From Epithemia pelagica (lineage: Eukaryota > Protista > Bacillariophyta): DNA of 64,000 bases. Below, piece by piece: positions 13,759-37,775 of the stretch (position 1 is the first letter of the stretch; each line of letters starts with the position of its first letter). The notes under the pieces are model-generated. The model made no database searches. It had not been told where the DNA came from and saw nothing but the letters and a program-made list of their open reading frames with translations. The DNA lies in assembly GCA_946965045.2 (NCBI GenBank), contig OX337242.1, forward strand, positions 1,240,001 to 1,304,000, written 5' to 3'. The position numbers were made by a program, and so were the translations under genes.

Positions 13759-13761
13759 CTA

Positions 13762-17056: not shown

Positions 17057-20000
17057 ATGGATCCTCAATCACCCAAGACACCTACGACTCCTAAGGGAGA
17101 AGATAACCAAGACAATGTCTCGAACACAGACCTATTCGACCACATCATATTTACTGTCTGCCAATTCTTTACCAAAGAAAGGGCCGACTACTTAATGAAG
17201 TGGATGAAATACCATGGTTTTGAGAACATTACCCATGTTATCTCGTATATGCAAACTAATACCGAGGAATCCATGAACGAACTGACACAATACAAGGTCA
17301 ACAAACAGACACATGATCTACAAGGCCCCACAAGACAGCAGATCAAGCTCTTGGCTTATTGGGCCATATACAAGACCAATGAAATTCAAGACAAGCTATC
17401 CAATAGCGACTGGATGAACCTAACGAGGAAAGAGTTCAACATTTGGAGGATCAATACAAATTTCTCTAAGGGACCACCTAGCCAAGTTCCAGTCTCGCCA
17501 ATGAAGTCACCGTCATCTGTGAAATCTGTCAGCACAGTTACGGCCGCATCCCAATCTCAACAAGACCTTACAGCATTCAGAAAGGGAACTAAGCGCGACG
17601 CAACTGCATATGAGGTATTCAAGGATGAACGATACACTACGATTCATTCTGGCGTGTATTCAAGACTACAGCTAAGGCTCAAGGCCTATCCAACGTTCTG
17701 AATTTCAAATACACACCACCCCATGATGATGAGTATGCCGAAGAACTTTTTCAAGAGCAACAAGTATTTCTCTACTCCGTTCTTGTCCGTATCATTCAGA
17801 CTGACCAAGGTCGAGCCTATGTACGTGAACATGAACATGATGAAGATGTGCGTGCCGTATTGCAGAAGTTACACTCTTTGCATACCGAATCCGACCTAGC
17901 AAAACGAGAAGTCCTCCGTTTAACCAACTACATTTCCAATCTACGTCTTGACGACACATGGCGCGGAACAACACGTCAATTTCTTCTACACTTTCAAGAG
18001 CAGCTACGTTTGCTAGACAATCTAGTGACATTGTCTGATCGCATCCCTGATCATACCAGGATGACCTTCCTCATGCAAGCTGTAGAAAAGGTACCTGATC
18101 TCCGCCGAGTCAAGATCTTGGATAATGTGGTGAACACCAAATCCGGTGCAAAATCCCTTTGCTATCAATCATACTTCCGTCTCCTTCTAGACGCAGCTTA
18201 TGACCATGATCAAGCAACCCAGTCATCTGTTCATAGTCGCCGTCAACATGTCAAACAACATGAATCACTATATGGCCAAGATACAGATGCTGACATAACC
18301 TCACAAGATGATATGGAGTATCATGTCCACAACACCAAAGCGACATCTGAATCTCCATCCTCTTCGTCCAAGGTTAGTCTACTGCGTGACCTATGGTTCA
18401 AACTTTCTGAAGAAGATCGCAAGTTGATGATTGAGTATAACAAGATGATTCAAGCACCTTCATCAACAACACCGAGGAAAGTGCAAACACATGCCCTCGA
18501 CATTGATCCGGAACCTGATCCTGACCCCAACCAAGTTGCATCTGATGACGACTCACCTGGCGTAGTCCCTGAGCATCCAGATGATTCAGATCCGGTTACA
18601 CAATTTATCAACCAAGCCATGACGACTGATATCAATCACCCGGCAACTGACCTGACTAGTGTTCTTTCTGACGCCAAGTCCAAGACGAGCAAGAAGGTTA
18701 CTTTCAAAGCCAACATGCATAAACAAGCAGGACATGTTCCACGCTATTTGTTTTCCAGGAAATCTACTTTACCAGGAAATCAATTGATTGACCGTGGTGC
18801 TAATGGAGGACTTGCTGGTTCTGACATGCGCATCCTTTCTAAGACTGGCCGCCATATCACTATTGTGGGTATTGATAACCATGAACTTACTGGACTTCCT
18901 GTCGTCACATGTGCCGCAAAGACCAATGATGGACCTATTGTCGGCATCTTCAATGAATATGCTTATTATGGAAAGGGCTTATCTATCCATGCTCCTGGTC
19001 AATTCGAGCATTTCGGACTTGCTGTTGATGAACGATCTGTTAAAGTTGATGGTAAACAACGCATCACTACACTTGATGGTCGTGCTATACCCCTTCACAT
19101 CAAGGATGGGTTAGCCTACATCCACTCCTTGGGTATCCCCAGCGACGATGACATGAATACCTTACCTCAGATCATCTTCACGTCACCCGACACATGGGAT
19201 CCTGGTGTTCTGGACCATTCGTACTCTCCCACACCCTCTGACAATGATCCTGATTGGAAACACGTCAAGACTGATGGCAGTATGTCGAACCATCCATATG
19301 ACAACTATGGGGAGTACACTGATCGTGTTGTTTGTAACCTCAATCTCCTTTTGGATCTCCCATACGATCATGGACCTGACGACGCACCCTTCTTTTCTAT
19401 CTATGCTGACACAGAAGGTAATGATCCTACACTTCATGCCTCTGTCCACCGTCGTTACCAGGAAGCGTATGACTGGAAGAAGTTCCGTCCATTCTTTGGT
19501 TGGCAATCTGAAGATGTTATTGCCGATACGTTCAAGCACACTACACGTAATGGTAGCATTACTTTTGACCACGACACCCTCAAGAAACATTTCAAGGCTC
19601 GCAATCCGGTCCTTAATATACCTCGACGTCATGAACCCGTTGCTACTGACTCGGTTTTCTCCGACACCCCTGCTGTTGACCATGGCGGTAAAGTCGCACA
19701 AATCTTTGTTGGTCGAGATACTCTGGTTACTGATATCTATGGGATCAAGTCAACCAAACAGTTTGTCAATACTCTTCAGGACAACATCCCGTTTCGTGGT
19801 GCCATGGAGACTCTTATCAGTGATGGTGGTTCATCTCTCATCTCTCAAAAGGTCAAAGACATTCTTCGCACTTTGCTTATTGGGGAGTATCGGTCCGAAC
19901 CTTATCATCAACACCAGAATAAGGCTGAAAACCGTTACCAGACCGTCAAACGTATGACCAACGCTCTCATGAATGCCACTGGTTGCCCTGCCAACACCTG

Positions 20001-20210
20001 GCTTCTTTGCCTTGAGTATGTCTGTGACTTATTGAACCATACATCATCACCCACCCATTCCGGTCGCACTCCTCTTGAGGCTCTCTCCGGACGCCCACCC
20101 GACATTACTCATCTCTTGTTCTTTCCTTTCTGGGATGAGGTTTACTACCGTGTCGACCCCGCTGAACCCAATTCCGGTTCATATCCATCTTCATCTGATG
20201 AGAAACTTGT
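17057..20210 (+). pseudogene. Copia gag-protease-integrase, frameshift at ~17635, truncated in the integrase
   Basis: Gag motifs FRKGTKRD and KTTAKAQGL (in different frames); protease LIDRGANGG; integrase ATDSVF, LISDGG and HQNKAENRY. Fused directly to LTR sequence. Confidence 0.9.
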
Positions 20211-20372
20211 ATCACCATTTATCACATCTTCTTTTGTGTCCCGACTATCCTTCTGATAGACTTCGACTTGCTTGCTTCTCTGACCCTGAGAAGCTTGTAT
20301 CGGTTGGTGACCTACCTGATTGTCTGCTCTACCGAGCATCAATGCCTCTGCAATTCCAAGAGAATTGTAACA
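20210..20372 (+). repeat. 3' LTR remnant (last ~163 bp only)
   Basis: Matches ~15758-15920 with one visible mismatch (TCAACTT vs TCGACTT). Confidence 0.92.
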
Positions 20373-20986
20373 GGAACTTGATGGTTTGGACGGACAAGAA
20401 TCAACCGGAAAGGTGATTATTGAGTCAAGGCCAGGGTGGGCTCCAATTGGCGAAGCTTGAAAACCAAAAAGCCACAATCCGAACAAGAAGGGTGCACCCA
20501 GAGAAAGCTTGATGTATCAATTCAATGGAAACAAGAGAGACAAAGAACCACTGATGCTGTTTTTTGTTGTCACCTGAGGTCAATCATTGGGGGTATGGAA
20601 GAGTGTTGGAACGGATAATGACTTCTTCACTGTTAATAGCAAAAGGAACCGCCAAAAACGAGACTTGCAGCAATGCGTTTTGCAACGGGGCCACAGACAC
20701 CAATCACAGATCACAGCTTCTCTGTTGCGCTGGACCTGTGCACAAACTGACTGACAACTGTTTGTTGAAGAGCCCTCTTTCTCCCCAATCTCGCAGATTA
20801 GAGGCAATCGCAAATAGTAATGATCACTACAACAATCAACAAGGCAAATATGGAACGAGACAGCTGCTGTGGACCATACAAACAAAAGGGGAGAAAAGGA
20901 ACAGCAGATGAAAGGCAATCAAAAGTTTACAGGTAATGTTCTTGGGTAGTTGCAAGGTGACGGAGGCATCTCTCGGGCTGCTCTAG

Positions 20987-23117
20987 TGCCTTCACGGGTG
21001 ATACGGCCAGACCCTGCATTTTAGCGGCCAAATGACCATGGTGGTCTTTAACGATTACTAGCTCAATATAGCACCTCCATAGAAATGGGATGATAGAAAT
21101 CATCTTCATACAATGCTTTAGGTCCCCACCGGGCACCTTTTCCATATCTGCCATCGTCATCGAGTTCTCTCTCATCATTGTAGGGTCATTTTTTTTTTGC
21201 GATTTGGCCGCTAGATTGCCCGTTGGCCAGTACATTCACCATGCGATTTCTCCACCAATAATTGACCAATTGCCATGAAATTAAAATATGTTATCGACCT
21301 TAGTATAAATAAGAACACTATTGACCCATATAGGCTATCCCCAAGCATAGGATGCAAACGAGCTTCCACACCATTGCATCGATTTTTCGACGTGGCACGG
21401 ACCACATGAGATTAGCCTACTCATTCGTCGAAGTCAGCTCCATGAATACGGCCGCTCCAGACGTCCTACTTAGTAGTCTTTTATGTTAGGCTCTACTTTA
21501 GCGATCTGAGGTATCAGATCGATCATCGGTGATATGGCCATTGAGAAAAGGCGATCCATCGATGGACGCTTTTTTTCGACGCATCACACATACCAGGAGT
21601 TTTCGACCAAAGGATGACGAGACCCAGCTCCATGGATATGGCCGCTCCAGACGTCCTACTTAGTAGTCTTTTATGTTAGGCTCTACTTTAGCGATCTGAG
21701 GTATCAGATCGATCATCGGTGATATGGCCATTGAGAAAAGGCCATCCATCGATGGACGCTTCTTTTCGACGCATCACACACAACAGGAGTTTTCGACCAA
21801 AGGATGACGAGACCCAGCTCCATGGATATGGCCGCTCCAGACGTCCTACTTAGTAGTCTTTTATGTTAGGCTCTACTTTAGCGATCTGAGGTATCAGATC
21901 GATCATCGGTGGTATGGCCATTGAGAAAAGGCCATCCATCGATGGACGCTTCTTTTCGACGCATCACACACAACACGAGTTTTCGACCAAAGGATGACGA
22001 GACCCAGCTCCATGGATATGGCCGCTCCAGACGTCCTACTTAGTAGTCTTTTATGTTAGGCTCTACTTTAGCGATCTGAGGTATCAGATCGATCATCGGT
22101 GGTATGGCCATTGAGAAAAGGCCATCCATCGATGGACGCTTCTTTTCGACGCATCACACACAACACGAGTTTTCGACCAAAGGATGACGAGACCCGGCTC
22201 CATGGATATGGCCGCTCCAGACGTACTACTTCTTTGACCGTTACTATAGAGACTAAGTTAGGTTATACAAGTCTCAGATCCGGCATAGGGGCCATGGTCC
22301 TCATGATCGAGGCAATCATCCATGGACAATTATTCGTCGTGCCAAGGATTTTGGACCAATGGACGATGCCATGCCAATATTCGACAATGGTCCCTCCGGA
22401 CGTCCTACTTTTTTGCCCGTCACTATAGAGACTAAGTTAGGTTATACAAGTCTCAGATCCGGCTTAGGGGCCATGGTCCTCATGATCGAGGCGATCATCC
22501 ATGGACAATCATTCGTCGTGCCACGGAGCACAAGGATTTTGGACCAATGGACGATGCCATGCCAATATTCGACAATGGTCCCTCCGGACGTCCTACTTTT
22601 TTGCCCGTTACTATAGAGACTAAGTTAGGTTATACAAGTCTCAGATCCGGCTTAGGGGCCATGGTCCTCATGATCGAGGCGATCATCCATGGACAATCAT
22701 TCGTCGTGCCACGGAGCACAAGGATTTTGGACCAATGGACGATGCCATGCCAATATTCGACAATGGTCCCTCTGGACGTCCTTCTTTTTTGCCCGTTACT
22801 ATAGAGACTAAGTTAGGTTATACAAGTCTCAGATCCGGCGTAGGGGCCATGGTCCTCATGATCGAGGCGATCATCCATGGACAATCATTCGTCGTGCTAC
22901 GGAGCACAAGGATTTTGGACCAATGGACGATGCCATGCCAATATTCGACAATGGTCCCTCTGGACGTCCTTCTTTTTTGCCCGTTACTATAGAGACTAAG
23001 TTAGGTTATACAAGTCTCAGATCCGGCTTAGGGGCCATGGTCCTCATGATCGAGGCGATCATCCATGGACAATCATTCGTCGTGCTACGGAGCACAAGGA
23101 TTTTGGACCAATGGACG
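20987..23117 (+). repeat. Left TIR: ~465 bp unique + 4 x 190-bp type A units (21451-22210) + ~4.7 x 188-bp type B units
   Basis: GCCGCTCCAG at 21451/21641/21831/22021/22211; ACTATAGAG at 22243/22422/22610/22798/22986. Confidence 0.95.
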
Positions 23118-23197
23118 AAGCCGCGCTATGATCCAACTCTAAAGCTTATGTTTCCATATTTATCGTCATTGCTATACTTGACAGGCTTAACTATCAT

Positions 23198-23710
23198 TTA
23201 TTTGCCATAGGTGTCGAAGAGGAAGTCACCGTCATGTTGTTGAGTCTCGGCAAAGTCGAACGAAAGATCGCTGTCTACAGCAGTTCCACGGGAAGATGCA
23301 CTCTTGAGGCTACGTATGGAGGCGGTGCTCAGGGTGGATAAACGGGACGAAGGCTTCTGATTGTCTTCAGGGATGGGGCTGATCTCATCAGCAAACTTGA
23401 TCTTGGAATGGCGCACTGGAGTGTTGCTCCCTCCGTTCGATCCATGTTCCAGGAAATCGTCTCTCATCTTGAGGATTGATGATCGACTCATTTCCACACC
23501 AATTGCATCACACCCGAGCAAGATCTCCTTCTTCTTCTCCGTATCTACGGCTTTCGCATTGTCGTCGTTGTTGTTGTTCTTGTTGTTCTTGTGGGCACCT
23601 TTTTGGGTTGGGCGCATAGTGGGTTTGGATGCACCAGTTGTGACAACACTTTTGGTCGTACGGCCTTGGAGCCTCGCACTAACACGGCGCTTGTCGATGT
23701 AGAGCGACAT
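23198..23710 (-). CDS. Cargo ORF, unknown function (basic, Ser-rich)
   Basis: 170-aa ATG-started ORF; no domain recognised. Confidence 0.45.
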   Translation of the reverse strand: MSLYIDKRRVSARLQGRTTKSVVTTGASKPTMRPTQKGAHKNNKNNNNDDNAKAVDTEKKKEILLGCDAIGVEMSRSSILKMRDDFLEHGSNGGSNTPVRHSKIKFADEISPIPEDNQKPSSRLSTLSTASIRSLKSASSRGTAVDSDLSFDFAETQQHDGDFLFDTYGK

Positions 23711-24199
23711 GTCTTTCTTTCTTTGTCCTTGCTTTTGTCGTCTGTTTTCTTTTCCTTGCTGTCCTTTATGCCTTTATGGGAAGGTTGCTCTTGTTATTTG
23801 ATTGATGATCGACCAGTCGTCTCACATTAAAATCTTGTCGCGCTGTAAATTGTGGAGGGCACGCGCTTCAACGGATGGAACTTTTCTTAAGCATATCGTC
23901 ACGTTGTTTTAATTAATCCCGAGTGGCAATTGTAGAAAGTCCCCACCGTTTCCCCCAAACCACAACTGCATTTTTATGCATGCCGACTGGATACCACGGA
24001 CGTGTTCGTCCTTTCGTGCAGAGAGGAGAGAATTGATCGGCCATCTGAGTGGCAAGCTCCTCTAACTAAATACTTTTCATTTGACAATCCAATAAGGAGT
24101 AGGAAAAGAGGTAAGTGCCTATCTCAAACTTGTTTTGCACTGTGCGACTCATCGCGTCTCACCCTTCATATTTTCTACATTTACGATGGACGAAGGACG

Positions 24200-24736
24200 A
24201 TGTCGGAATACGAGCACGAATCGCGCAATAGACTTCTCCTTGCAAATGGGTTCAACGTGATGCAAGATGACGGGAGCGAGATTCAGCTCCATGGTAGCCG
24301 AGCAACGATCTATGGCGAAGCGGGCGTGAATGTGTACGTCCAAGACGCCGCTCGTGATGGGAAAGGTGGAAAGGGGACGCTTGTGGTGGATCGAGGTGTC
24401 GTTCTTTTACAGCGCTCCAAGTACAGGAGCAACGGTGGGATGCTATCAATTAGCGCATTTGGTCGGGAGAAGATGGATGATTCGATGCCTGATGTCGTCA
24501 TCCCAGTCGGATCGATCTACAAGAAAATACGCTCCAAGAAGTTCCGTTCCAAGAGCGGTTCCCTTGTCAAAGGAGAGCTCACGATTGAAACGGCTCATTC
24601 TTTGGATACCAAGATGGCCATGGGGCCCATGGTCATTACTGTGCGGATGAGTGTTGTTGGGATGGCTACGTTCATGTCACTTTTTGATAAAGCGACAGAG
24701 ACGTGGCCCCATCAGGAGAGCGTTCGAACCTATTAG
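24200..24736 (+). CDS. Cargo ORF, unknown function (178 aa from the first plausible ATG)
   Basis: Globular-looking, beta-rich ORF convergent with the transposase. Confidence 0.5.
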   Translation: MSEYEHESRNRLLLANGFNVMQDDGSEIQLHGSRATIYGEAGVNVYVQDAARDGKGGKGTLVVDRGVVLLQRSKYRSNGGMLSISAFGREKMDDSMPDVVIPVGSIYKKIRSKKFRSKSGSLVKGELTIETAHSLDTKMAMGPMVITVRMSVVGMATFMSLFDKATETWPHQESVRTY

Positions 24737-24867
24737 TCGTAGGATCCCATAGCATATTACACTTGAGTACTAAGATTTCGATGTTACTAAGCTCCTAATC
24801 ATAATTTATTAATATGCAAAGACATGAAACAATGTAGAGTCGACCTGGTTCTCATGTTCGGGACAAA

Positions 24868-27800
24868 TCAGTTGTGGTTTTCCTTTTGGCTTGCCGCAAT
24901 AACACGGCACATGTGCTCTTCAAGGCAAGTCCGCACTTGGTCGGGACGAATACCCATGGAGGGCTTACACAAAGGAACTCCAACTTTGGCTTCCCCGCAA
25001 AACATCTTGATTATATTGCAGCATGTTGGATGCCCGCACATTGATCTCGTGTCATTTTTACAAATAACACATTTGCGCTTCACGGGCCGCTGGTCAGATA
25101 AAGACTTTTCTGCCTGTTCCACAACCTCATGACAAACCAGTGAATCATTGGTCAGATCAGACACCATGGAGTTAGGAGATGCATTCCCCCCCACATTGTG
25201 CACGCTCGATGGCACAGAAGTTGAGGGCCCAACAGTGTGTACCGAAAGCGGCGGACGACGTGTCACTGGGATGTTTGGTAACATGCCCGCCTTTCGATTG
25301 CTGCGATCATCGGAAAAGTTGTTTCTCAAAAGGTCGTTTGCGAGCATATCCGCGAAGTCTTCGATCGTAAAGCTCGAGAATGGTTCCGCTTGCAGATGAA
25401 AACGCATGCCAAGGTAACAATCAGACACTGTCATTCCGAACACCGTTGTCGCAATGCGAAACCATGGATCAACTGTTCTCCAGTACTGCTCGAGACGGAG
25501 GATGCCCTGACGCAGATGATTGTGACGGTCAATTTTATTCGCACACTTGAAGTACTGGGAAATACAGTCAGGCCGTTCGACTCTCCGGCTTTTGACATTG
25601 CCGAACTCATCGGTAAATCGAGCAATGTACGGACATCCCGGGATCGTTTTCCCCGCATTTTTAGTCATAACAAAGAGGAGGACTTTCCGTGAGTTGTACT
25701 TGTATCCGATTCCAACAAGCTTTACTCCCGTCTCAGGTGCCGTGCACTCCATGACGAGATAGGCGCCGGATGGGAAGTCCTTCATCTCCTTCTCAAGTTC
25801 GTCCTTGGGGAACCAAGAGTGGGCGGTCTTGACGGCACCAATCACTTCGTGGGCGTCTGGGTTGACCCCTTTCTCCTTATCCACGTAATACACGAGACCA
25901 TCATCATCGTCGTCCTCCGTCTGCTCGTGCCACGTACACTTGAGGTTCTCGGCCATCTTGACACTTCCAAACCAAGAGTCTCCGATATAGAGGCATCGCT
26001 TGGAATCGAGTTGGGATTCATAGCGACCATTTAATTGCTGCCCTGAGTATTGCGAGCCCTCAATCAGTCGCAGAGTTGTCGCTCCAGTTACTCCCAAACC
26101 ATCAACATACTTCTTCGCACGCATCGGGAGTCTGCCTTCTTGGATTTCAAGAAAGGTCAGACACCCAGTCGCAGTGTCTGCAGTCACCTGTCAAGGGAAT
26201 ATCACACAGTGAGTAACAAAGCTTCTGGAAATATCCTCTTCTCCATTTACTCACCTTGAATTCAGTTCCAAGAGGTTTGGGCTTCCGTGCCACGTAAGAC
26301 AGATGTGGCAACAATGATGACTTGGTTGTCCGTGGTTGAAATGCACTCATGCATTCATCAAGCACTTGTGTCGCGGATGCTGCGACTACGCCTCGGCGAT
26401 TCTGATTAAAGCCGTCAATCAATGGACGGATTTCATTCCAGGGGTCAGTGGAGTCCCGTCCCGCAAAGGCATGCCTGAGATGCTCTTTGATATCCATGAA
26501 CCGACTCTCAGCAATAAAGTTTTCGCCTTTTGTACCGAGATTCACTGTGGACGACAGCCGTCGTTGTTCAGGCTTCTGGAAAAGAGCCTTTCCTCCCTTT
26601 TTGAGGGGATTGGCAGAGAGGATCACTCCCCATACAACCCACCATTCTTTCTCTGTCACGGGTCGAATCTTCTTCTTTTTATGGCGAGAAGGGTTTGTTC
26701 GCTCTAAGAATAAATTAAGGTTTTTTAGCTGATCACGCCAATTTCCTGTAATGGATGAGCAAATCGATAGAAAAATGAGACATGGACTAAAGGGCATTCA
26801 AGAAAAAGAGTGCTGACTTACCAGGCCAGAAATGAATCAACAAGTCAAGAAAGGGGTACTTGTACTCAATATTATCTGCGCTAATTTCGTACGGAGCCAT
26901 TTTCCCCAAAAAGTCGAAGCCTATAATTCCAACAGCCTCTTGGTATTCGGTGACTGACTCATCGGGAGACGAATCCCGTACAATCTTCCATACGAAAGTT
27001 CGGTTGTCGTTGGGCTTTCGGAGTTGGGTATGCTTGATATCTATGGTCGCTTCCTCATCTCCATCAAAATGCACCGTCCACAGGTTTCCTTGAGTAGCAT
27101 CTGGATCCTTTCTTCCGCTGATGACTATCCCGTATCGAGGATTCGCACCCCTCTCGGAAACTCTATCCCCGACCTCAATCCCTTTCTTCTTTGGAGGTTT
27201 CATGGTCACTTTCCAGTTGGACGTAATGAGATGCTGTTTTCGAGCCCTATAGGCCGCAAATCTCTGACGGTGAATGTCGTCGTCTTGTTCAACAAGGGCC
27301 CCGAGAGCCATTGCCTTGGCTTGCTCAGCCCCCTCATTCTCAAGATCTGCATCAAGCTCCGTTGGATCTTCAGCGGCTTCATTATCCGCTGCTGCAACCG
27401 ACGAGTCATCCTCATCGGCGGCGGCAGCGGCCGCTGCCTCGGCAATAACAGCAGCACCACCTTCCTCTTCATCATTTGCATTGCCTTCATTGGTTGGGGG
27501 CCCGTGGTCTACATTCTCCGCTTCCGCAGCTTGCGCTATGATGTTCGGATCGTCTTCGTCTTGGTCCACATCTGTCAAAATCGGTGGGTGAATTGTACTC
27601 GCTTCCGTGACGGTGGCTCAGCTCCTGTCGTTGTCGTTGTTGTTGCCGCGGCCTCGGTTGCGGTTGCGGTTACGGCCACGGTCTCCGTTGCAGTTGCGGC
27701 CACGGTCTCGGTTGCAGTTGCAGTTGCGGTTGTGGTTGTTGTTGTTGTTGTTGTTGTTGCGGCTGCGGTTGCGGTTGCAGTTGCGGTCTCGGTTGCGGCT

Positions 27801-28330
27801 GCGGCTGCGGTTGTGGTTGTGGTTGTGGTTGTTGTTGCGGCTGCGGCTGCGGCTGCGGTTGCGGTTGCAGTTGCGGTCTCGGTTGCGGCTGCGGCTGCGG
27901 TTGTGGTTGTGGTTGTGGTTGTTGTTGCGGCTGCGGCTGCGGCTGCGGTTGCGGTTGCAGTTGCGGTCTCGGTTGCGGCTGCGGCTGCGGTTGTGGTTGT
28001 GGTTGTTGTTGCGGCTGCGGCTGCGGTTGCGGTTGCGGTTACGGCCACGGTCTCGGTTGCGGCTGCGGTTGTGCTTACGGCTGTTTCATCTGGGTCCGGT
28101 ACGGGTTCCCCAGGAAAGCGCTCATCTTTCTTTATTTTCCGTAGTCTCTTGGACGTGGCTTCTTCTATCTGGTCAGTAGGATTGCCTTGCCTGTCTACTA
28201 CAGCAACACGCCACTTTTGCAAATCAAGGGCCTCAATAATAATACATGCCCTGTCTCCTTGTCGTATGTAGCATTTCGTTCCAACTCCTAAAGGTGCTTT
28301 CTGATCTTTCGCCTTCTGCGTCGTGGGCAT
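24868..28330 (-). CDS. piggyBac-family DDD transposase (~1,100 aa), 2 introns, 1 frameshift at ~27590
   Basis: VLDECM, RKPKPLGTEFK, IGDSWFGS and KIDRHNHLRQG motifs; C-terminal Cys-rich domain. In-phase GT-AG introns at 26746-26821 and 26188-26254. Confidence 0.9.
27630..28080. repeat. Coding Ala/Thr microsatellite-derived repeat in the transposase N-terminus
   Basis: GTT/GCG/GTTGCG arrays with a higher-order repeat unit. Confidence 0.9.
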
Positions 28331-28711
28331 CTTTGATTATCTTTCTCTACCGCTTTGTCTCGCGTCTCTATTCTGAGCAAGACAATTTCCATCGTGGGTC
28401 GAAAGCAAATTTTCGATTTGGAAACATGGTTGTTGAATGAACTGTGGATCGATGTTGGAGGGAAAACCTCTCAGTTTGTGACGCAGTCGCATCAGTCAAC
28501 ATACCGAAAAATGTGCCTAATGCAGTCGCAGCAGTCAACGCACCAAAAATGTGGCTTTGCCATGCGCACAGGGCATAAGTAAGTTTGTATTCTCAAAAGC
28601 GTTACTCAATTTTAGTTCAAGTCAACTGTGGATCGTGGTGTTTCGTCGCGTTTCAAGTGTTCGACCGACGAAGGAAACCTTTTGTCGAACACGAGAATAA
28701 AACGATAAACG

Positions 28712-28772
28712 ATGCCAACGAGGTTTGATACTCTTTTGGATGCTGTAGACACTGTCTCACAGGCAGCCGCAC

Positions 28773-28813
<41 letters not shown>

Positions 28814-31402
28814 ACAGCAGCAGCAGCAGCAACAGCAGCAACAGCAGCAACAGCAGCAACAGCAGCAACAGCAGCAACAGCAGCAACAGCAGCAACAGCA
28901 GACGAAGCGCCCGAAGAGGAGATGACAACAACGAAGGAAGCGACACCAACAGCGGGTCATCATCGGTTTCTTTCGGACGCAGATCTTGCTATGGTGACCG
29001 AAAATAGGATTGCGGAGAGTCGTCGAGGCAATCTGAAGGATGATAGTGACAAAGCCTACAGCGTCACGCACCGTGCGGTGAGTCAGCGCCTCGTTGACCG
29101 ACGTAAAGAGGCCTACAGGACCGCCGTCGCAGCAGTGAAGCGCATTAAGAGCTCTACGCGAGATCCGCATACCAATTTCATCCAAGGACTCACACATCTG
29201 GCCTCTACAATCCACGAAAGTGATGTGCTTCTCAACGCATACGTAACATTTTCGGTGAAAGCTGCTCCCATTCGGAAATCAGGGACAGGTATCAAGAAGG
29301 AGGTCGATGAGTACGGTGTCGAACTCGGAACAAATGCACCGAGATCTGTGGGAATTGGGATTCCGTTGAAGCAACACCGAGGGAAAAAAATGAACGTTTT
29401 CCCGAATGTCAGTTTCACGCTCGACCATGACCCGGAGTTCAACATTATGCTGGGAAAAACACCTCTCTTTGTTGTGAAGAAGTCGAAGGTCAAAGTCAAA
29501 GACGGAAAAGACGGTGGATTTGGTATTTTTGCAGCGCAGGAATACAAAGAAGGAGAGGTGATAGGTGTCTATGCAGGACAGGATGTAACAACAAAACTTG
29601 TCCCGCGGAGCGAGTACTCGCTTCAATTTGGAGCCGACGATGAACCACGCACCGTTCAACCTGACAACGAGAACTATTTTTTCATGGGATTCCATCTGAG
29701 CAACGATCCCTACTACGACCTCTACGACAAGGGTGAAGTCCCCAACGAAGCAGATGAAATGTACAACATTAAAGTGGAAAAAAATCTTCTCGTCCGCGCA
29801 ATCAGGGACATCGACGAGGGCAAAGAGTGTTTCTTGTTCTACAACATCACCCAGGAGAATGCAATGCAAGCTTCATCATACATCCCTCGCGAGGGCGCAG
29901 GAAAGAAGCGTGGTAGATCCACTGGCGGGGAAGAGAGCAAAGATTTGCCGGGAAAGAAGAAGAACAAGAAGAAGCCAAATACACGTCGTTCTGGTGAGGC
30001 GGATTCTCCAGTGCAGCTCTCTGAACATGGTCCGGTGGATGATGCTCCTGTTGTTTTTCCGATTCCTCAGGTCACTACTCCTGCCATTGCTGCCACTGCG
30101 ACTGCCCCTGTTCCTCTTGGTTCCCCTCCTCCAGCCCGTGGTCTTGTCCCTGCTCACGACCATCAAACCTACGGCCAATCTCCTCCGTACCAACATCCAC
30201 AGCAGCCTCCACCGTACTATCATCCTCCACGCCAACCTCCTCTGTACCAATCTCCTCCCCACTATCAGCAGTCCGCATTCGCGTCGGTGCACTACCCAGG
30301 GCAAAGTCAGCCTCATTACTCGCCGGCCTACGGGCAGCCACCTTATGGAGAATATGGGCAGGTACCACCACAGCCCATTCATCCTTCCCATCACCCGGTA
30401 ATCCATCATCTCTCCAGTCCGGGAGGATCGGCAGCTCCGTCACTCGAGCGCATTGAAGATTCCGTCGTCAAACAAGCAACTACAGAGCAGCAAGTGAAGG
30501 AACTGCACCGGAAGCATGCCCATTTGTTGGTCGATCTCGAGGGTGACCGCCGAGGACGTTTTGTGGTGGTTGCGAAGGAGCTGCTTGATATGTTGCGTCT
30601 ACCGTGGTGTCTCGGAACGGACAGGCACGGAAAGGACAAGATCACGAAGAGGATGCAAGGGGTTCAAAACTTCTCGAAGCAAATTCAAATGCGCATGCAG
30701 GAAAATGAAGGTTTTGTGATGAGCCATGACTTTAGCGCCTACTCTAAGGACGAGCTAGCTGCAATGACGAAGAATTTCAAGACAGTTCTCGCTCAAGCCC
30801 TTGTGGAGATGGGCTACGCAGCAGACGTCTCGTTTGCGGACGGAATCCAGATTCACCTGTCCTATATCAAGACCGAAGAGCCAAAAGTCCAAGAGCCGCA
30901 CCTGGACTTCATGTGGGAAGTTGTCACGCCGAGTTCCAATGACCTTTTGCCCGGTGAGAGCCCGAGATCGAAAGGAGTGACAACTCGGGGAGTGGGAAAG
31001 AAAAAGGCACCGTTCAAAGAACGTGTCCCGTTTGTTGTCTTCATGCCCCTGACGGAAGCCGGCATGGCCGTGGAAATATGGCAGCATCGTAACAACCACA
31101 CTGCCAAACTCCATCAGCTGGGTGAGGTGGTTGAGATCCCTTATGGAACGATGCTGCTTACGCGAGGCGATACCGTTCACGCGGGAGGCTTCGTGAATGG
31201 TACCCAAGGTGATCCACGTGCCCATTTCTACGTGTACCAAGGACGCAATGAGACTGTCCATACATACCCACCCAGAAACAACTATGAATTACCGACCGAA
31301 TATAAGATGAATGATCGTCTCGCAAAATTCTACAAGCACGGTCACAACATCCCTTACTCCTCACCAACGAAAGTGCTCGGTGGACTCGATTTGAACAATT
31401 GA
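28712..31402 (+). CDS. Cargo: SET domain + C-terminal 2OG-Fe(II) dioxygenase-like fusion protein (896 aa)
   Basis: SET motifs GFGIFAAQEYKEGEVIGVYAG, GFHLSNDP and RAIRDIDEGKECFLFY. Dioxygenase HxD...H...R motifs QEPHLD, GDTVHAGG and DPRAHFY. Confidence 0.8.
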
Positions 31403-31909
31403 GACTTATTAGTTTATAGCTGCATGTAATACTTTAGTTCATTGTTGTGTTGAATGAGCTCTCGGACATGGTTTCTTGTCTCTCTTGTCTCTCGTCACTT
31501 GTGTCTGCGATCTCGATCAGTTGACTTGCAATAAAATTCATCTGTGGATTGGGGGAAATTTGGGGGACGTGTGACATATTCCCTCCAACTCTCCTCCGAC
31601 TACCCATGCTATGCCTGGCTATCATGCTGATGAGCGACCGAAAGATACGACGCCCTCAAGTAAGCACTCTAGCGCTCGAAAATTTATGGAGAGAAGGAGT
31701 GAATTATACACTATTGATCTATATAGAATAGTGTTCGAAGAGTTGACGCTTGGGAGTCATTGGTTACTTGGTGGCATCGCCTTCCCAAAAAATTCCGAAC
31801 AAGCAGCCACAAAACAAAAGATCTTCTCCCTCCCAACACTTTCATTGACTGGTACGGGGCGGGATTCGATTCGTCGGTCCTCAGTCCTGCCATCACTTGC
31901 AGTAAAAGC

Positions 31910-32473
31910 ATGTCGTCGCCATCGCTGTCTGATGCGGCCATCATTGCCGAACTTGTAGGACGAGTCTTGTTGGAAATGGACGCCATGCGGAGCAACCACA
32001 ACGAAGGACGACAAGCCCAAGCAGAAGAAGAAGATGAAGATGATGAAGATGATGATTATGAAGAAGAAGAAGAAGAAGAAGAAGATGATGATGATGATCA
32101 TGAAGAAGATTATGAAGAAGAAGAACAAGAAGAAGAAGAAGAAGAAGAAGCCCACCAAGATCCAGCTCCTGCCGCACCGCATCGTCACTTGATTGCGGCC
32201 TCCCCCAAGCCACACAACAAATTGCATCACAACCATGCGACGAGTCCGTTTCAACCATTCAAGCCACGACCAACCAAACGCTGCCGCCAACAAGATCCTC
32301 CCTGTGCCATCACCAAGGTCGATCGGAAACCTCGCTACAGTCGTGCCTCTTCTTTGTTTGTGCCGATCCCACACCGAGCCACCACGAAGGAAAAGGCACC
32401 GACTCATCACAAGCGCAAGAAGCCCAAGATTATGTTCTTCATTGACCTGTGCGATAGTTCTGAAGATGAATAG
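31910..32473 (+). CDS. Cargo ORF with a long acidic tract and basic C-terminus
   Basis: ATG at 31910; GAA/GAT repeat encodes poly-E/D. Confidence 0.5.
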   Translation: MSSPSLSDAAIIAELVGRVLLEMDAMRSNHNEGRQAQAEEEDEDDEDDDYEEEEEEEEDDDDDHEEDYEEEEQEEEEEEEAHQDPAPAAPHRHLIAASPKPHNKLHHNHATSPFQPFKPRPTKRCRQQDPPCAITKVDRKPRYSRASSLFVPIPHRATTKEKAPTHHKRKKPKIMFFIDLCDSSEDE

Positions 32474-32552
32474 TTGAGTAACTACATATAGTGCTGACGT
32501 TAGAAACAAGGCAAGACACTTGCTTCATTAGTTAAAAAAGTTTCTGCTTTAA

Positions 32553-35013
32553 GATCGATTCAATCTCAACAACCATGGCACCTACGCCAGATCTAAAGCT
32601 TGGGTAAGCTACTGTAGGAGCTAAACTAAGTGTCCATTGGGTAGGACGTGCAGAGAGCATATATTGAATGAGCCGCGTTGCGTCGTCGTTTGGTCAAAAT
32701 CTCATGTGGTCTGTGCCACGACGAGAAGTTGCCCATCGACGATCGCATCGCGCTCGACAACCATGGCACCTACGCCAGATCTAAAGCTTGGGTAAGCTAC
32801 TGTAGGAGCTAAACTAAGTGTCCATTGGGCAGGACGTGCAGAGAGCTTATATTGAACGAGCCGCGTCGCGTCGTCTTTTGGTCGAAATCTCATGTGGTCT
32901 ATGCCACGATGAGAAATTGTCCAACAACGATCGTATCGCGCTCGACCACCATGACCCCTACACCAGATCTGAGACTTCGGTAAGCTACTGTAGGAGCTAA
33001 ACCAAGTGTCCACAAAGTAGGATGAGCCGAGAGCTCATATTGAACAAGCCGCGTTGCGTCGTCTTTTGGTCAAAATCTCATGTGGTCTGTGCCACGACGA
33101 GAAATTGTCAAACAACGATCGCATTGCGCTCGACCACCATGACCCCTACGCCGGATCTGAGACTTCGGTAAGCTACTTTAGGGTCTACCCTAAATGGCCA
33201 TGAAGTACGACAAGCCGAGAGCTCATTTTGAACGAGCAGCGTTGCGTCGTCTTTTGGTCCAAAAACCTTGTGGTGCGTGGCACGACGAGAAATTGTCCAA
33301 CAACGATCGCTTCAAGGTTAACAACCATGGCCCCTACGCCGGCTCTGAAACTTGTAGAACCTAATGTAGTCTCAATAGTAACGGGCAAAAAAGTAGGACG
33401 TCCGGAGGGACCATGGTTGAATATTGGCATGGCATCGTCCATTGGTCCAAAATCCTTGTGCTCCGTGGCACGACGAATAATCGTCCATGGATGATCGCCT
33501 CGATCATGAGGACCATGGCCCCTAAGCCGGATCTGAGACTTGGGTAACCTAACTTAGTCTCTATAGTAACGGGCAAAAAAGTAGGACGTCCAGAGGAACC
33601 ATTGTCGAATATTGGCATGGCATCGTCCATTGGTCCAAAATCCTTGTGCTCCGTGGCACGACGAATGATTGTCCATGGATGATCGCCTCGATCATGAGGA
33701 CCATGGCCCCTACGCCGGATCTGAGACTTGTATAACCTAACTTAGTCTCTATAGTAACGGGCAAAAAAGTAGGACGTCTGGAGCGGCCATATCCATGGAG
33801 CCGGGTCTCGTCATCCTTTGGTCGAAAACTCGTGTTGTGTGTGATGCATCGAAAAGAAGCGTCCATCGATGGATGGCCTTTTCTCAATGGCCATATCACC
33901 GATGATCGATCTGATACCTCAGATCGCTAAAGTAGAGCCTAACATAAAAGACTACTAAGTAGGACGTCTGGAGCGGCCATATCCATGGAGCCGGGTCTCG
34001 TCATCCTTTGGTCGAAAACTCGTGTTGTGTGTGATGCATCGAAAAGAAGCGTCCATCGATGGATGGCCTTTTCTCAATGGCCATATCACCGATGATCAAT
34101 CTGATACCTCAGATCGCTAAAGTAGAGCCTAACATAAAAGACTACTAAGTAGGACGTCTGGAGCGGCCATATCCATGGAGCCGGGTCTCGTCATCCTTTG
34201 GTCAAAAACTCGTGTTGTGTGTGATGCGTCGAAAAGAAGCGTCCACCGATGGATGGCCTTTTCTCAATGGCCATACCACCGATGATCGATCTGATACCTC
34301 AGATCGCTAAAGTAGAGCCTAACATAAAAGACTACTAAGTGGGACGTCTGGAGCGGCCATATCCATGGAGCCGGGTCTCGTCATCCTTTGGTCGAAAACT
34401 CGTGTTGTGTGTGATGCATCGAAAAGAAGCGTCCATCGATGGATGGCCTTTTCTCAATGGCCATATCACCGATGATCGATCTGATACCTCAGATCGCTAA
34501 AGTAGAGCCTAACATAAAAGACTACTAAGTAGGACGTCTGGAGCGGCCGTATTCATGGAGCTGACTTCGACGAATGAGTAGGCTAATCTCATGTGGTCCG
34601 TGCCACGTCGAAAAATCGACGCAATGGTGTGGAAGCTCGTTTGCATCCTATGCCTGGGGATAGCCTATATGGGTCAATAGTGTTCTCATTTACACTAAGG
34701 TCGATAACATATTTTAATTTCATGGCAATTGGTCGAGTATTGGTGGAGAAATCGCATGGTGAATGTACCGGCCAATGGGCAATCTAGCGGCCAAATCGCA
34801 AAAAAAAAAAATGACCCTACAATGATGAGAGAGAACTCGATGACGATGGCAGATATGGAAAAAGTGCCCGGTGGGGACCTAAAGCATTGTATGAAGATGA
34901 TTTCTATCATCCCATTTCTATGGAGGTGCTATATTGAGCTAGTAATTGTTAAAGACCACCATGGTCATTTGGCCGCTAAAATGCAGGGTCTGGCCGTATC
35001 ACCCGTGAAGGCA
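32553..35013 (-). repeat. Right TIR: ~6.5 x 188-bp type C/B units + 4 x 190-bp type A units (33778-34547) + ~465 bp unique
   Basis: CTGGAGCGGC at 33778/33968/34158/34348/34538; CCATG(G/A)C..CTA unit every 188 bp from 32574 to 33702; reverse complement of the left TIR. Confidence 0.93.
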
Positions 35014-35375
35014 CTAGGTGCAAGAAGCAAGAAGGCGGGTAGGGGGTAGACTTGGTAGGGAGACGACGACACCGGGCGGAAAACCGCGCCTTTTGGTCTT
35101 GTTCCCGCGCATGCCATCTTGGAGGGAAGCGCGCGCGAAATGCCGCGCGTCCATCGCACGTGCACTCATCGGTCGCGTTTGGACAGACAACGGACGACGG
35201 CGAGATTCTGGTATGATGGTGGTAAGGACCACGCACGCTGCACCACAACACGTTGTGCGAATCTTCAATTGGGCATGGTTGTGTTCGTCGAATCACCTTC
35301 TCCATTGAATTGAATACTGCTTCCCTGGACACACATTTTATTCCTTGTGGGTTCAACCAAGGCAAATCTTGAGGA

Positions 35376-37775
35376 GTGAATGACCCACGACCGTCATTGG
35401 TGAGAATATCATCCTTTTTCCATCCATTGTTCTGTTGTCGATATTCCATCATGTCTCGGCACCCGCATCTCTGGCACATACAACTTGACAACCCCTCGAG
35501 GTTGAGCAATCAAAGTCATTGCAACTCGAAGAAACGAACGATGCGACCTGTACACTGCACGGCAATGGATGCCATGTTCCAGGAAAAACGAATTGCACCA
35601 GAAGAGTTGCTCGACACAACAAGGGACTGTTCCGGATCGGTTGTTGTGGGAGAAATGAGAACTCGCCGCAAGATTCCAGGTGAATGGCGATTCGCCACCA
35701 GGTTTGCACCATCATATCGGAGATGTCAGAGAGAAGAGCAAGTCAGCCATGTTGCAAAGAACAGAAGGTATGGTACCAGCGATCGGTGTACTTCTTCGAT
35801 TCGAACCGTATCGTCAAGTCGTTTGTGTTGGTGCTTGTTTGCCCTGGCAGCGGCACACAGTTTCGAGTCAACCAGAGTCCTGTTTGGCTCGCCTCCAGTT
35901 TCTTTTCTCTTTGCTTCGTTTTTGGTACTGGGAAGCAGCAACAACGTGGCACATGCCTTTTTGCAACGATCCGTCGCGTCACGGAAAGTGGCGTTTGGAA
36001 TGGTGTTGCATCAAGAATTTCCTCCCAGCGATGCCGATCCCTCCGACTCCAGTGAGAGTAGCAGCGGCAAAAACGGCGAAACACCAATATTCGGTGGCAC
36101 CAATGGCGAACATTCCCAAGAACCTTCGCACTTCGAATGGCAACAACAATACCCCATGGTCAATGGAAATCATGTCGTTGACGTCAAGAACAAGATAAAC
36201 TCGAACAATACCACATTGGTCCATGGAAAGGACAACCATGACAACAACGAGTTACTCTTGCAGAAACGAGTCACCCAACTGGAAGAATTGGTGGCCCGTC
36301 AAGCAGTTGATATTAAACGGTTGCAAGAAGAATGTCGTGATTTGACCGAAGCGGCCGCGGCCTTTGCCAAGGTTGTGGAACTTTTGAGAGCGACTGGTCT
36401 CAACACGGACGATCTGGACGATGAGCATACCAACAAGAATGGCACGGAGGCTCTTTCATTGCTACCGGGTGAGGATAAGAATGGCGACAACGACACGGTC
36501 GTCTGTGTCAATGAAGATTCGGAAATCTTTGGGACGGCGCCATCCAACGTGATGGACGCGGCCGATGCCGCGGGGGCAGCCATTCTTGCGGCTCTCTTGG
36601 GTGGACAACAACGACTATTGGTGGATGTGAGGGATGCTGAATTGACCTCCAATGCAGATACGTTGGTGCAGTTTATTGAACTTGCCATTTTGCCCGTTGC
36701 CGCTGGATTGGAGGGTTTGCGGTTGAAACGCAACCGGTTAAAAATTGTCTTTCCAACTGTCAAGCAACTGCTGCAATATCGCAAGACCATGGCCTTGGCT
36801 GCACCCGAAGTGGTAGCCCTGTCCACACTCAACTTGGATCCTGTGGAACCTCATGATAATTTGGTCGTGATTGTGGCACCCGCACCAGACGATGAAGAGG
36901 GCTGTCAAGTCATGAATCAGTTGCTACAACCACCAGAGATCCTTGCTAATGATGATGCGGATGTCGCAGATGACAATGGGTTTCAACCAATGTTTCCCTC
37001 GAAGGGAATCCGGCAGCCGGTTGTTGTTCTGAATCCGCACATGGTTCCCATGCAGGGTCCGGCTGCCTCCTATGAAGTCGCATATCAACTACGGCTGCTA
37101 TCCGTCCAGTACATGTCATCTCAAACATGCCCTGGCGAAGGCTACGTCCAACATGGCGATTTCAAAAAGACAGGAAATGACTCGGGTGATTCAATCATTG
37201 AGGCAGATGTCCTAGGAGAAGAATGTGATGACATCGAGATGCAAAATGAGCTGTTCAACGAAGACAGCATGATTGAAAACATTGACAATCTGGTACAGCT
37301 TGATGATGTCCACACATCCAGCAGTGATGACAGAGGGACGACAGAAGAAGCTGAAAATGATGAAGAAGCCTTGGAGGCAGCAATGCAACATGCACATGAA
37401 GTAAACCGTGGTGGTGGGAGTGCGAGATCAGTGGTCAAAGGGACAACTCGAGCAATGGTGATTCGTGCCTATCCCAATCCATGGCACGTTTTTGTGGATA
37501 CTTCGCCTGATACAGATGCTGACTTTACCATTGCGGGAACATTTGACACTGCTCCATCATCAGATGATATTCAATTGGCAATCATTGAGAGTTTGGAAGG
37601 GAGTGAGCGTGAGGATGAAATCGTTGCTCAGCAAATGCAACAGGCACTTGAAACTGGACAGCTTGATCGTGTATGTGAAATGCTGGGGGATATGGGATTA
37701 GATATCTTTGATGAGGAAGAAGAAGATGACGATGACAATGACCCATGGGGATTGTTTGGCGTTGATAGTGTATAG
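35376..37775 (+). CDS. DUF1995-like, probably plastid-targeted protein (true start probably downstream of the ORF start)
   Basis: Hydrophobic segment ending AHAFLQ (diatom bipartite signal-like); coiled coil; RLLVDV...RLKIVFP and VIRAYPNPWHVFVD motifs resembling DUF1995. Confidence 0.65.
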   Translation: MNDPRPSLVRISSFFHPLFCCRYSIMSRHPHLWHIQLDNPSRLSNQSHCNSKKRTMRPVHCTAMDAMFQEKRIAPEELLDTTRDCSGSVVVGEMRTRRKIPGEWRFATRFAPSYRRCQREEQVSHVAKNRRYGTSDRCTSSIRTVSSSRLCWCLFALAAAHSFESTRVLFGSPPVSFLFASFLVLGSSNNVAHAFLQRSVASRKVAFGMVLHQEFPPSDADPSDSSESSSGKNGETPIFGGTNGEHSQEPSHFEWQQQYPMVNGNHVVDVKNKINSNNTTLVHGKDNHDNNELLLQKRVTQLEELVARQAVDIKRLQEECRDLTEAAAAFAKVVELLRATGLNTDDLDDEHTNKNGTEALSLLPGEDKNGDNDTVVCVNEDSEIFGTAPSNVMDAADAAGAAILAALLGGQQRLLVDVRDAELTSNADTLVQFIELAILPVAAGLEGLRLKRNRLKIVFPTVKQLLQYRKTMALAAPEVVALSTLNLDPVEPHDNLVVIVAPAPDDEEGCQVMNQLLQPPEILANDDADVADDNGFQPMFPSKGIRQPVVVLNPHMVPMQGPAASYEVAYQLRLLSVQYMSSQTCPGEGYVQHGDFKKTGNDSGDSIIEADVLGEECDDIEMQNELFNEDSMIENIDNLVQLDDVHTSSSDDRGTTEEAENDEEALEAAMQHAHEVNRGGGSARSVVKGTTRAMVIRAYPNPWHVFVDTSPDTDADFTIAGTFDTAPSSDDIQLAIIESLEGSEREDEIVAQQMQQALETGQLDRVCEMLGDMGLDIFDEEEEDDDDNDPWGLFGVDSV

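Follow-up and report, generated by a model that had tools for sequence, protein, structure and literature searches.

The 64,000-nucleotide stretch of contig OX337242.1 analyzed here, which we call the window and to whose positions all coordinates refer, contains a 14-kb locus in which a piggyBac-like transposase gene stands beside a gene that joins a SET domain to an Fe(II)/2-oxoglutarate (2OG) oxygenase domain, both enclosed by long inverted arms built of tandem repeats of about 190 bp. Do these parts belong to one mobile element, and what would such an enzyme gene do for it? As to the first question, the locus is a mobile DNA transposon that moves by cut and paste, belongs to the piggyBac superfamily, and resides in a raphid pennate diatom, and we hold this with hardly any reservation. 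As to the second, comparison with homologues indicates that the fusion gene is very probably an accessory gene maintained by purifying selection.

Boundaries, relatives and transposase of the element

The transposon measures 14,027 bp (20987-35013) and is bounded by identical inverted termini. By direct reading, a CTAG, the putative target-site duplication, is found on its left side (20983-20986) and on its right side (35014-35017). After the CTAG both ends start with TGCCTTCACGGG, and beyond it the left and right sequences are unrelated. An inverted-repeat search returned arms of 2.15 and 2.46 kb (20983-23137 and 32553-35017, respectively), in which complementarity is 99% over the outermost 216 nt and 97% over a stretch of 1160 nt. 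Each arm consists of a unique terminus of approximately 450 bp followed by 9 to 11 units of a 188/190-bp repeat. The left terminal region of the long inverted repeat (20987-21434, plus strand) holds one partial repeat unit, and ~240 nt of it are conserved with the termini of the L003 subfamily introduced below; the right terminal region spans 34562-35013 on the minus strand. A preliminary description of this DNA had proposed a single element of ~14 kb with a piggyBac transposase and with inverted ends of 2.1-2.5 kb composed of ~190-bp units, and these proposals agree with the dimensions given here and with the transposase matches given at the end of this section. Every part that it named was found where it had been placed, at a level well above what chance would produce.

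Relatives were found via homologues of transposase exon 3 in one diatom ENA assembly, ERZ21939226. Two loci, L001 and L023, are of the window type and are 97-99% identical to it. L001 has an intact fusion gene of 891 aa, a nonsense codon in transposase exon 3, and one truncated end; in L023 the transposase is fully open, the fusion gene contains an in-frame stop, and one end is short by 302 nt. A subfamily with a 63% identical transposase comprises L003, a complete element of 14.3 kb with an intact 921-aa fusion gene and 193-nt arrays of 13.8 and 9.6 units, and L024, a complete element of 12.0 kb with a frameshifted fusion gene. In another subfamily, represented by L002, the transposase is 79% identical and the arrays have a 190-nt unit; the fusion gene of L002 comprises its N-terminal and oxygenase parts and lacks the SET part. 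L004, L020, and L021 are simple elements of 6.4-7.6 kb with inverted repeats of ~215-260 nt, a transposase, orf244, and a trace of orf170, from which the fusion gene and the arrays are absent; their transposases are ~54-56% identical over most of exon 3. Transposase fragments were also found on separate contigs or at separate places, and cluster membership assigns at least four of them to the window type, at least five to the L003 type, and at least six to the L002 type.

Several features of individual copies were observed along the way. The window copy, L001, and L023 are separated by a synonymous divergence (dS) of ~0.015, and each has a different disabling lesion, so that none of the three is fully intact. 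In L002 (2856-6165), the segment that begins at the end of the oxygenase domain and includes orf115 occurs in three tandem copies, and the left side of this element is abutted by a different, unrelated piggyBac transposase gene.

The same set of genes recurs in complete or near-complete copies at unrelated loci (L001, L023, L003, and L024), and the genes and arms are one mobile unit. The only observation that would suit an immobile locus, i.e., a host gene cluster lying by chance between two inverted satellite blocks, is that an empty site was not found; a 12-14-kb unit that recurs with the same exact termini at unrelated loci, between unrelated flanks and next to different host genes in every case, refutes this explanation, and we give it practically no weight. 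The preliminary description had also suggested a search for shared cargo and for empty sites. The first gave a clear answer, in that both cargo and transposase are present in the other copies with the same termini, and synteny does not mark the cargo as a host gene at this site; the second yielded none among the flanks of all insertions in the fetched loci. A maximum-likelihood tree of exon 3 groups the cargo elements in one clade (98/99 support) and the simple elements in another (100/98 support). Read from the relationships of these copies, the cargo and the arrays were gained once, in the common ancestor of one sub-clade.

The junction CTAG|TGCC is present at 15 of the 15 termini examined, which represent 9 insertions from 6 subfamilies with unrelated outer flanks, and this constancy makes CTAG, rather than TTAA, the probable target. 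We infer that the flanking CTAG is duplicated, as no empty site was found in which this could be read directly; that the constancy of the flanks is the sole argument for a target duplication speaks against this part of our interpretation. An uninterrupted paralogue of the flanks of any insertion was not present among the fetched loci. The neighboring DUF1995 gene, used as a query for an empty site, has no close orthologue (the best match, from Epithemia, is 62% identical), and the gene adjoining the L004 insertion is present at a single place and gave no empty site. The left edge of L002 was checked for a nested insertion as a possible empty site, and a clear boundary motif was not found there. 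Ten matches to a degenerate form of the terminal motif in metagenome contigs of the Joint Genome Institute (JGI) were taken as chance, as these contigs have no transposase and no similarity to the element.

The transposase gene lies on the minus strand, where it starts at 28330, ends at 24868, and is divided into four open stretches that differ in frame. Exon 1 (26822-28330) encodes two barrel domains and their linkers and is followed by intron 1 (26746-26821; 76 nt, GTAAGT..ACAG by direct reading), exon 2 (26255-26745), in which the DDE_Tnp_1_7 core (Pfam PF13843) starts, intron 2 (26188-26254; 67 nt, GTGAGT..ACAG by direct reading), and exon 3 (24868-26187 including the stop codon), which contains the putative second and third catalytic Asp motifs and a C-terminal Cys-rich domain. 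The position of intron 1 is conserved across all subfamilies, and excision of the two introns restores conserved motifs, that of intron 2 the motif KPxPLGTEFKV|ADTxTG. Within exon 1, a 1-nt deletion at 27609-27619 leaves CC in place of the CCC of L001 and L023 and breaks the frame. A reading of this break as an intron was rejected because a single C makes the difference and exon 1 is one open frame in all other elements examined. With this one frameshift in its transposase, the window copy is, as judged from its sequence, non-autonomous and would need mobilization in trans; a fully open transposase is available in the sister copy L023.

Exon 2 matches the Pfam model DDE_Tnp_1_7 with 33.1 bits (cut-off, 22.4; E = 5e-8), and a profile of the transposase family matches the piggyBat transposase (PDB accession number 9c0f) with an E value of 6e-7. 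The family profile was required, as single-sequence searches of the PDB with exons 2 and 3 missed the piggyBac structures. The first catalytic Asp (LDECMS, 26359) aligns to LDEGIV of piggyBat 9c0f. The motifs DSWFGS (25980) and IDRHN (25530) are the putative second and third catalytic Asp motifs, assigned from near-invariant columns of the family and from known piggyBac motifs. The tail of exon 3 is rich in Cys and His and aligns weakly to the tail of piggyBat. Homologues of exon 3 number 90, many of which are annotated with PF13843. On this homology of the transposase, the element is assigned to piggyBac as a divergent clade with a variant target.

The SET/2OG oxygenase fusion gene

The fusion gene (28712-31402, plus strand) is an intact open reading frame (ORF) of 896 aa. 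The region between its start codon and the divergent start codon of the transposase is 381 bp long (28331-28711) and is presumed from the gene arrangement to be a bidirectional promoter; the same head-to-head arrangement is found in L001, L003, and L023. The SET domain (aa 269-378; 29516-29845, plus strand) matches Pfam PF00856 with 24.6 bits (cut-off, 22.4), and the model is covered over its full length with conservation of the G, N, E, and Y columns. The motifs GxG, NDP, and ELFLxY are conserved, and the canonical NHS is replaced by H-x-x-N-D-P. A family profile of 30 sequences matches EZH2 (E = 7e-8), MECOM/PRDM, MLL, and SETD8, as well as, weakly, the viral SET protein of PBCV-1.

The Fe(II)/2OG oxygenase domain occupies aa 589-896 (30476-31399, plus strand). 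Its predicted catalytic residues are H730 (30899), D732 (30905), H823 (31178), and R836 (31217); in a 41-sequence alignment, the first three are invariant and R836 is nearly so. The AlphaFold model of the domain has a predicted local distance difference test (pLDDT) score of 87, and the best Foldseek matches are FtmOx1, AndA, SnoN/K, and P4H with E values of ~1e-6 and TM-scores of ~0.4. The model has 328 PDB matches at E <= 0.001, and the best 50 of the 328 are all Fe/2OG oxygenases, namely, PhyH-type small-molecule oxygenases, DAOCS, and P4H. At the sequence level, the family profile reaches only FtmOx1 (E = 0.14). Approximately 116 stand-alone relatives of aa 589-896 are among the matches listed. 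Taken by sequence and model, the oxygenase is PhyH-like and lies outside the recognized histone and DNA demethylase families. The divergently transcribed SET/2OG-dioxygenase fusion of the preliminary description is thus upheld by the 896-aa ORF, the Pfam SET match, the HxD...H residues, and the structural match of the AlphaFold model to Fe/2OG dioxygenases.

Ratios of nonsynonymous to synonymous divergence (dN/dS) were calculated between subfamilies by the Nei-Gojobori method. The fusion gene gave 0.34-0.37 at a dS of ~1.1, and transposase exon 3 gave 0.18-0.37. Over the aligned codons, the fusion gene is 99% identical to that of L001, and the 921-aa homologue in L003 is 51% identical. The HxD...H...R signature is retained in transposon-borne and host-type oxygenase homologues alike, the SET motifs are retained in the transposon-borne copies, and the catalytic motifs of the fusion gene are retained in the third subfamily too. 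Purifying selection that persisted through the divergence of at least two subfamilies argues that the fusion gene serves the transposon.

The alternative would be a passenger without function: the element would have picked up a fragment of a host gene recently, as Pack-MULEs do, and the SET/2OG gene would be that fragment. Its interruption in L023 and L024 and the absence of the SET part from L002 would fit such a passenger; they indicate that the gene is dispensable for the persistence of a copy and, to that extent, count against the selected role that we prefer. Host-type relatives exist for both halves, which also fits. However, the window copy, L001, and L003 each have the long ORF uninterrupted (896, 891, and 921 aa, respectively), the dN/dS of the gene at that divergence lies within the range of the transposase, and the catalytic residues are conserved; the passenger explanation was already disfavored on these grounds, and we regard it as very unlikely.

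The two halves appear to have separate sources. For the SET half, a homologue of 404 aa with 43-49% identity occurs by itself in ERZ21939226 (L005), and transposon features were not seen near it. The oxygenase half has a homologue of 463 aa with 37-39% identity, which is encoded between ordinary genes on metagenomic eukaryote contigs (L006-L009). An exhaustive search of representative proteins with aa 70-896 for homologues of the fusion protein found no protein that covers both halves. Neither the fusion ORF nor ten ORFs of the window had an exact counterpart in the sequence collection, in which the genome of the window is thus not represented. In the simplest history suggested by these relatives, the ancestor of the cargo clade captured two host-type genes, which became fused and were then retained by selection.

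Repeat arrays, transposase barrels and possible function

The arms contain four tandem arrays, called in agreement by Tandem Repeats Finder (TRF) and by a direct-repeat search. On the left (plus strand), an outer array of 4.2 units of 190 nt (21435-22231; 98% matches in TRF, direct-repeat family D2) is followed by an inner array of 4.9 units of 188 nt (22208 to ~23122-23137; 96% matches in TRF, family D3). On the right (minus strand), the inner array contains ~6.5 more diverged units of 188 nt (32553-33790; TRF, family D1), and the outer array contains 4.2 units of 190 nt (33767-34561; TRF, family D4). The right inner array is inverted relative to the left inner array, and the right outer array is 95-97% complementary to the left outer array. 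Unit-by-unit alignment identifies the 190- and 188-nt units as variants of a single repeat. The period is 188-193 bp in three subfamilies, with 9-14 units per arm, and the two copies of one subfamily, L003 and L024, differ in length (14.3 versus 12.0 kb). Across subfamilies, short invariant blocks, such as TCCTACTT, recur in the consensus sequences of the unit. Neither the ~450-bp terminal regions nor the inverted repeats of the simple elements contain these blocks; therefore, the arrays constitute a separate module, and the idea that they are multiplied terminal binding sites was rejected.

In exon 1 of the transposase, on the minus strand, barrel 1 (28133-28291) is followed by a variable Thr/Ala-rich low-complexity linker (27645-28081), an acidic/helical linker, and barrel 2 (27012-27182). 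The variable linker is a hexamer/90-nt tandem repeat that codes for Thr/Ala runs, and its length varies among near-identical copies; the linker between the barrels is of low complexity in every subfamily, each with a sequence of its own. An AlphaFold model of exon 1, built from the intact L001 sequence and an eight-row alignment, is disordered save for the two barrels, which are five-stranded and have pLDDT values of 70-85. Their PDB matches include the chromo-barrels of MRG701/MRG2 (MRG/MSL3), TbTudor, and the PWWP domain of NSD2, with target TM-scores of 0.6-0.78, and the N-terminus of the transposase has zero Pfam matches at permissive thresholds. Barrel 1 contains the aromatic residues Y and W, and barrel 2 contains Y, W, and F; the barrels are conserved in all subfamilies. 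It is reasonable to call the modeled barrels Tudor/chromo-barrel-like at the level of the fold only. For the Tudor-like N-terminal domains of the preliminary description, this means support at the level of the fold, from two modeled barrels, with weak statistics (E >= 0.018).

The features described above suggest how such an element could work. The common ancestor of the cargo clade gained the fusion of SET and PhyH-like oxygenase in a head-to-head position with the transposase, as well as tandem arrays of the 188-193-bp unit that expanded inverted repeats of ~0.2 kb to arms of 2-3 kb. The fusion protein would probably modify chromatin proteins at or near the element, through lysine methylation by the SET domain and hydroxylation or demethylation by the oxygenase, and the modified local state would favor expression or transposition of the element. 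The arrays would probably act as a multicopy landing platform for proteins encoded by the element, and the barrels of the transposase would probably read a methyl mark, either to locate the ends of the element or to select insertion sites. We attach different weights to the parts of this proposal.

For a chromatin-directed role of the fusion protein, predicted from its domains, we consider the chances to be even. SET domains methylate non-histone proteins as well as histones, which weighs against this role, as do several properties of the oxygenase: none of the 41 members of its family matches any Pfam family, signals of JmjC, TET/JBP, or AlkB are absent, and the nearest structures, at TM-scores of only ~0.4, act on small molecules or on a translation factor. 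The fusion protein could instead serve the transposon in a job unrelated to chromatin and to the arrays; for example, the SET domain could methylate the transposase or another non-histone protein, and the oxygenase could hydroxylate a protein, an RNA, or a small molecule. Small-molecule oxygenases and an EF-Tu prolyl hydroxylase as the nearest structures, the lack of a JmjC, TET, or AlkB signal, the position of the host-context oxygenase homologue among metabolic and housekeeping genes, and a SET likeness to histone methyltransferases that is seen at the profile level only are all in keeping with a job of this kind. On the other hand, every one of the best matches to the SET domain is a histone lysine methyltransferase (EZH2, MLL, and SETD8), the match to the viral SET of PBCV-1 being weaker, and the transposase bears barrels that resemble methyl-lysine readers; moreover, every described precedent reads SET/2OG cargo of transposons as epigenetic (PMC12730594; bioRxiv 10.1101/2025.02.11.637652). 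We consider the non-chromatin job to be fairly unlikely.

That the fusion protein acts through the arrays is a more tentative suggestion, drawn from their joint presence. The arrays and the cargo arose once, and their co-occurrence is therefore weak evidence of a functional link. Further points against the proposal are the absence of the conserved unit blocks from the terminal regions, the lack of a Pfam-recognizable DNA-binding domain in the element proteins that could be linked to the arrays, and a CpG content that shows no special methylation history, CpG depletion being uninformative as a sign of methylation. Alternatively, the arrays may be plain subterminal repeats or an expanded internal satellite, either helpful to transposase assembly on long ends or functionless, and an accident in the history of one ancestor would have brought them together with the SET/2OG gene. 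CACTA, Mutator, and P elements commonly have subterminal repeats; the association here traces to one acquisition in one clade (n = 1); the number of units varies freely between arms and copies; and the right inner array is decaying, with units 65-88% identical. Nevertheless, unit motifs that are missing from the termini and from the inverted repeats of cargo-free relatives are not multiplied transposase sites, and the period of 188-193 bp and the invariant blocks are held across subfamilies whose transposases are 63-80% identical, so we judge this plain-repeat explanation unlikely.

The most complete version of the proposal, a self-contained writer-reader module in which the fusion protein would set a particular methyl-mark state on nucleosomes spaced by the ~190-bp arrays and the transposase barrels would read it for assembly on the long ends or for the choice of insertion sites, is in our view distinctly doubtful. 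All barrel matches have E values of 0.018 or more, CAP-Gly and KOW domains are also among them, and the barrels are present in the cargo-free clade as well and thus did not evolve together with the SET gene. If such a module existed, this lineage would control its own chromatin and escape silencing by the diatom; it would also be the first piggyBac clade with CTAG in place of TTAA as its target.

Neighboring sequence and comparison with known systems

Three further ORFs lie within the element. orf170 (23198-23710, minus strand) encodes a conserved low-complexity protein and is conserved in L001, L002, L003, L023, and L024; L020 and L021 have a weak match to its C-terminal motif at the corresponding position, which leaves a trace of orf170 in simple elements. 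orf244 (24002-24736, plus strand) is convergent with the transposase and has tblastn matches of 34-49% identity in every related element, including the cargo-free L004 (11741-12373), L020 (11892-12392), and L021 (11975-12502). The dN/dS is ~0.3 for orf244 and 0.28-0.44 for orf170. By its distribution orf244 is a core gene of the whole transposon clade and not cargo, and the same probably applies to orf170; a second conserved gene such as orf244 is unusual for piggyBac. orf115 (31611-31958, plus strand), a small ORF downstream of the fusion gene, is of doubtful significance: it is 97-100% identical in L001 and L023 and ~50% identical in L002, in which its region is triplicated, and it was not detected in L003 and is thus conserved only among closer subfamilies. 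orf170 and orf244 have zero Pfam matches, permissive thresholds included, and orf115 has only weak ones at chance level. The preliminary description had listed these as three orphan ORFs; the ORFs are there, and neither orf244 nor, probably, orf170 is cargo.

To the left of the element is a Copia-like remnant, and to its right is the DUF1995 gene (35376-37775), which is closest to genes of raphid pennate diatoms (Epithemia, 62%; Mayamaea; Fistulifera; Amphora). The element lies ~430 bp upstream of the first ATG of this gene (35451) and may therefore affect its promoter. The ORF of 802 aa that adjoins the element on the left (17848-20373) has zero Pfam matches. Positions 20001-20209 of this ORF match the inside of a Copia-type (RVT_2) ORF of L001 at 97.6% identity, and positions 20210-20373 (164 nt) are 95% identical to the sequence upstream of that Copia-type ORF; by these matches, it is probably a rearranged Copia remnant.

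A segmental duplication of ~15 kb with 95-99.5% identity connects positions 1-15139 with 47865-61684 and positions 15136-15917 with 44945-45728; the order at its inner edge is rearranged, and it carries PHD-finger, PDZ-like, and cyclophilin genes. Only the first copy contains a 2.37-kb insertion (~12016-14382) with TA on both sides and an ORF on the minus strand (12384-13544) that has the helix-turn-helix (HTH) of a Tc3-type transposase; the second copy has an uninterrupted site with a single TA at ~60955. From its features, the insertion looks like a Tc1/mariner-type element younger than the duplication. Positions 14667-14747 of L005 match positions 12049-12129 of the window, inside the edge of this insertion, at 88%, which suggests that the same Tc1/mariner-like family is shared by the window genome and the ENA assembly. 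The second duplication copy has an extra 1,092 nt (364 codons; 49973-51064, relative to the 2108/2109 junction), which lengthens an ORF from 437 to 801 aa and adds a PHD finger; its borders are not intron-like. An Rfam scan of the window gave no matches to RNA families.

Transposons with epigenetic enzymes of their own are rare, and they shed light on the arms race of mobile DNA with host silencing. Described cases come from fungi, oomycetes, red algae, and plants and from other superfamilies; the present element would extend them to piggyBac and to diatoms, with two enzyme types joined in one protein. A sister clade without cargo and arrays in the same genome provides a natural control, and this contrast makes the anti-silencing idea directly testable. 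In a literature coverage that is incomplete, we found no report of SET/oxygenase cargo in piggyBac, of such an element in diatoms, or of a piggyBac clade with CTAG flanks. The likely change of target from TTAA to CTAG should be of interest to transposon biologists and to engineers of piggyBac vectors, and reader-like barrels on a transposase could bias integration sites.

The idea has more precedent than the preliminary description assumed, as SET/2OG accessory genes with adjacent arrays are known from red-algal Plavaka. These EnSpm/CACTA elements have an accessory cassette, PAG1-3, beside tandem repeat arrays, in which PAG2 combines an N6-adenine methylase with SET and PAG3 combines a ParB-like domain with a 2OG oxygenase, and the authors suggest that such an element alters its own sequence or chromatin (bioRxiv 10.1101/2025.02.11.637652). 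The same study reports that Helitrons captured SET and 2OG genes and that HarbingerS has a SET gene (bioRxiv 10.1101/2025.02.11.637652). Like Plavaka, the diatom element has SET and 2OG-oxygenase genes by tandem arrays, and the best match of the Plavaka oxygenase is PhyH-like too (2OPW). However, the transposase superfamilies differ, Plavaka has two genes where the diatom element has one SET-oxygenase polypeptide, and Pfam searches found no N6-methylase or ParB-like domain in the diatom element, PAG2 and PAG3 having been compared by description.

In fungi, Kyakuja, Dileera, Zisupton, Plavaka, Helitron, and other transposons encode TET/JBP dioxygenases, and this cargo moved between transposon lineages and was interpreted as a means of escape from epigenetic silencing (PMC12730594); piggyBac is nowhere mentioned in that text. 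The diatom element resembles these transposons as a cut-and-paste element with 2OG-dioxygenase cargo, whereas its oxygenase is not TET/JBP and its host is a diatom. HarbingerS and MuDR families of Phytophthora are described as encoding a SET histone methyltransferase (Repbase Reports 2014, as cited in PMC12730594). As far as that secondhand description extends, they share with the diatom element a SET accessory gene in a stramenopile DNA transposon and differ from it in their superfamilies, and an oxygenase fusion and repeat-array arms are unreported for them there, the comparison having been made by description.

The analogy drawn in the preliminary description was to the VANDAL (MuDR) elements of Arabidopsis. 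VANC is an anti-silencing protein of VANDAL that acts on short repeated motifs inside its own element. Enzyme cargo and internal arrays with conserved short blocks give the diatom element a similar anatomy, and the likeness is known here from anatomy alone; unlike the fusion protein, VANC is not a SET/oxygenase enzyme, and a VANC-like sequence was not identified in the diatom element. Chromoviruses, Ty3/gypsy retrotransposons with an integrase chromodomain, are a model for chromatin-guided integration. The diatom element likewise has a Royal-family reader-like domain on the recombinase of a mobile element, whereas its barrels are N-terminal and on a transposase with a putative DDD triad.

With the piggyBac of Trichoplusia ni and with piggyBat, the element shares the DDE_Tnp_1_7 core, the C-terminal Cys-rich domain, and a palindromic tetranucleotide at both flanks. 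In contrast to canonical piggyBac, it is flanked by CTAG rather than TTAA, its termini start with TGCC rather than CCC, the inverted repeats of its clade are 0.2-2.5 kb rather than 13-19 bp long, and it measures 14 kb rather than ~2.5 kb; in addition, it has introns, two N-terminal barrels, a conserved second gene, and enzyme cargo. Judged by its transposase, the element is a piggyBac, and it is atypical in target, termini, size, and gene content.

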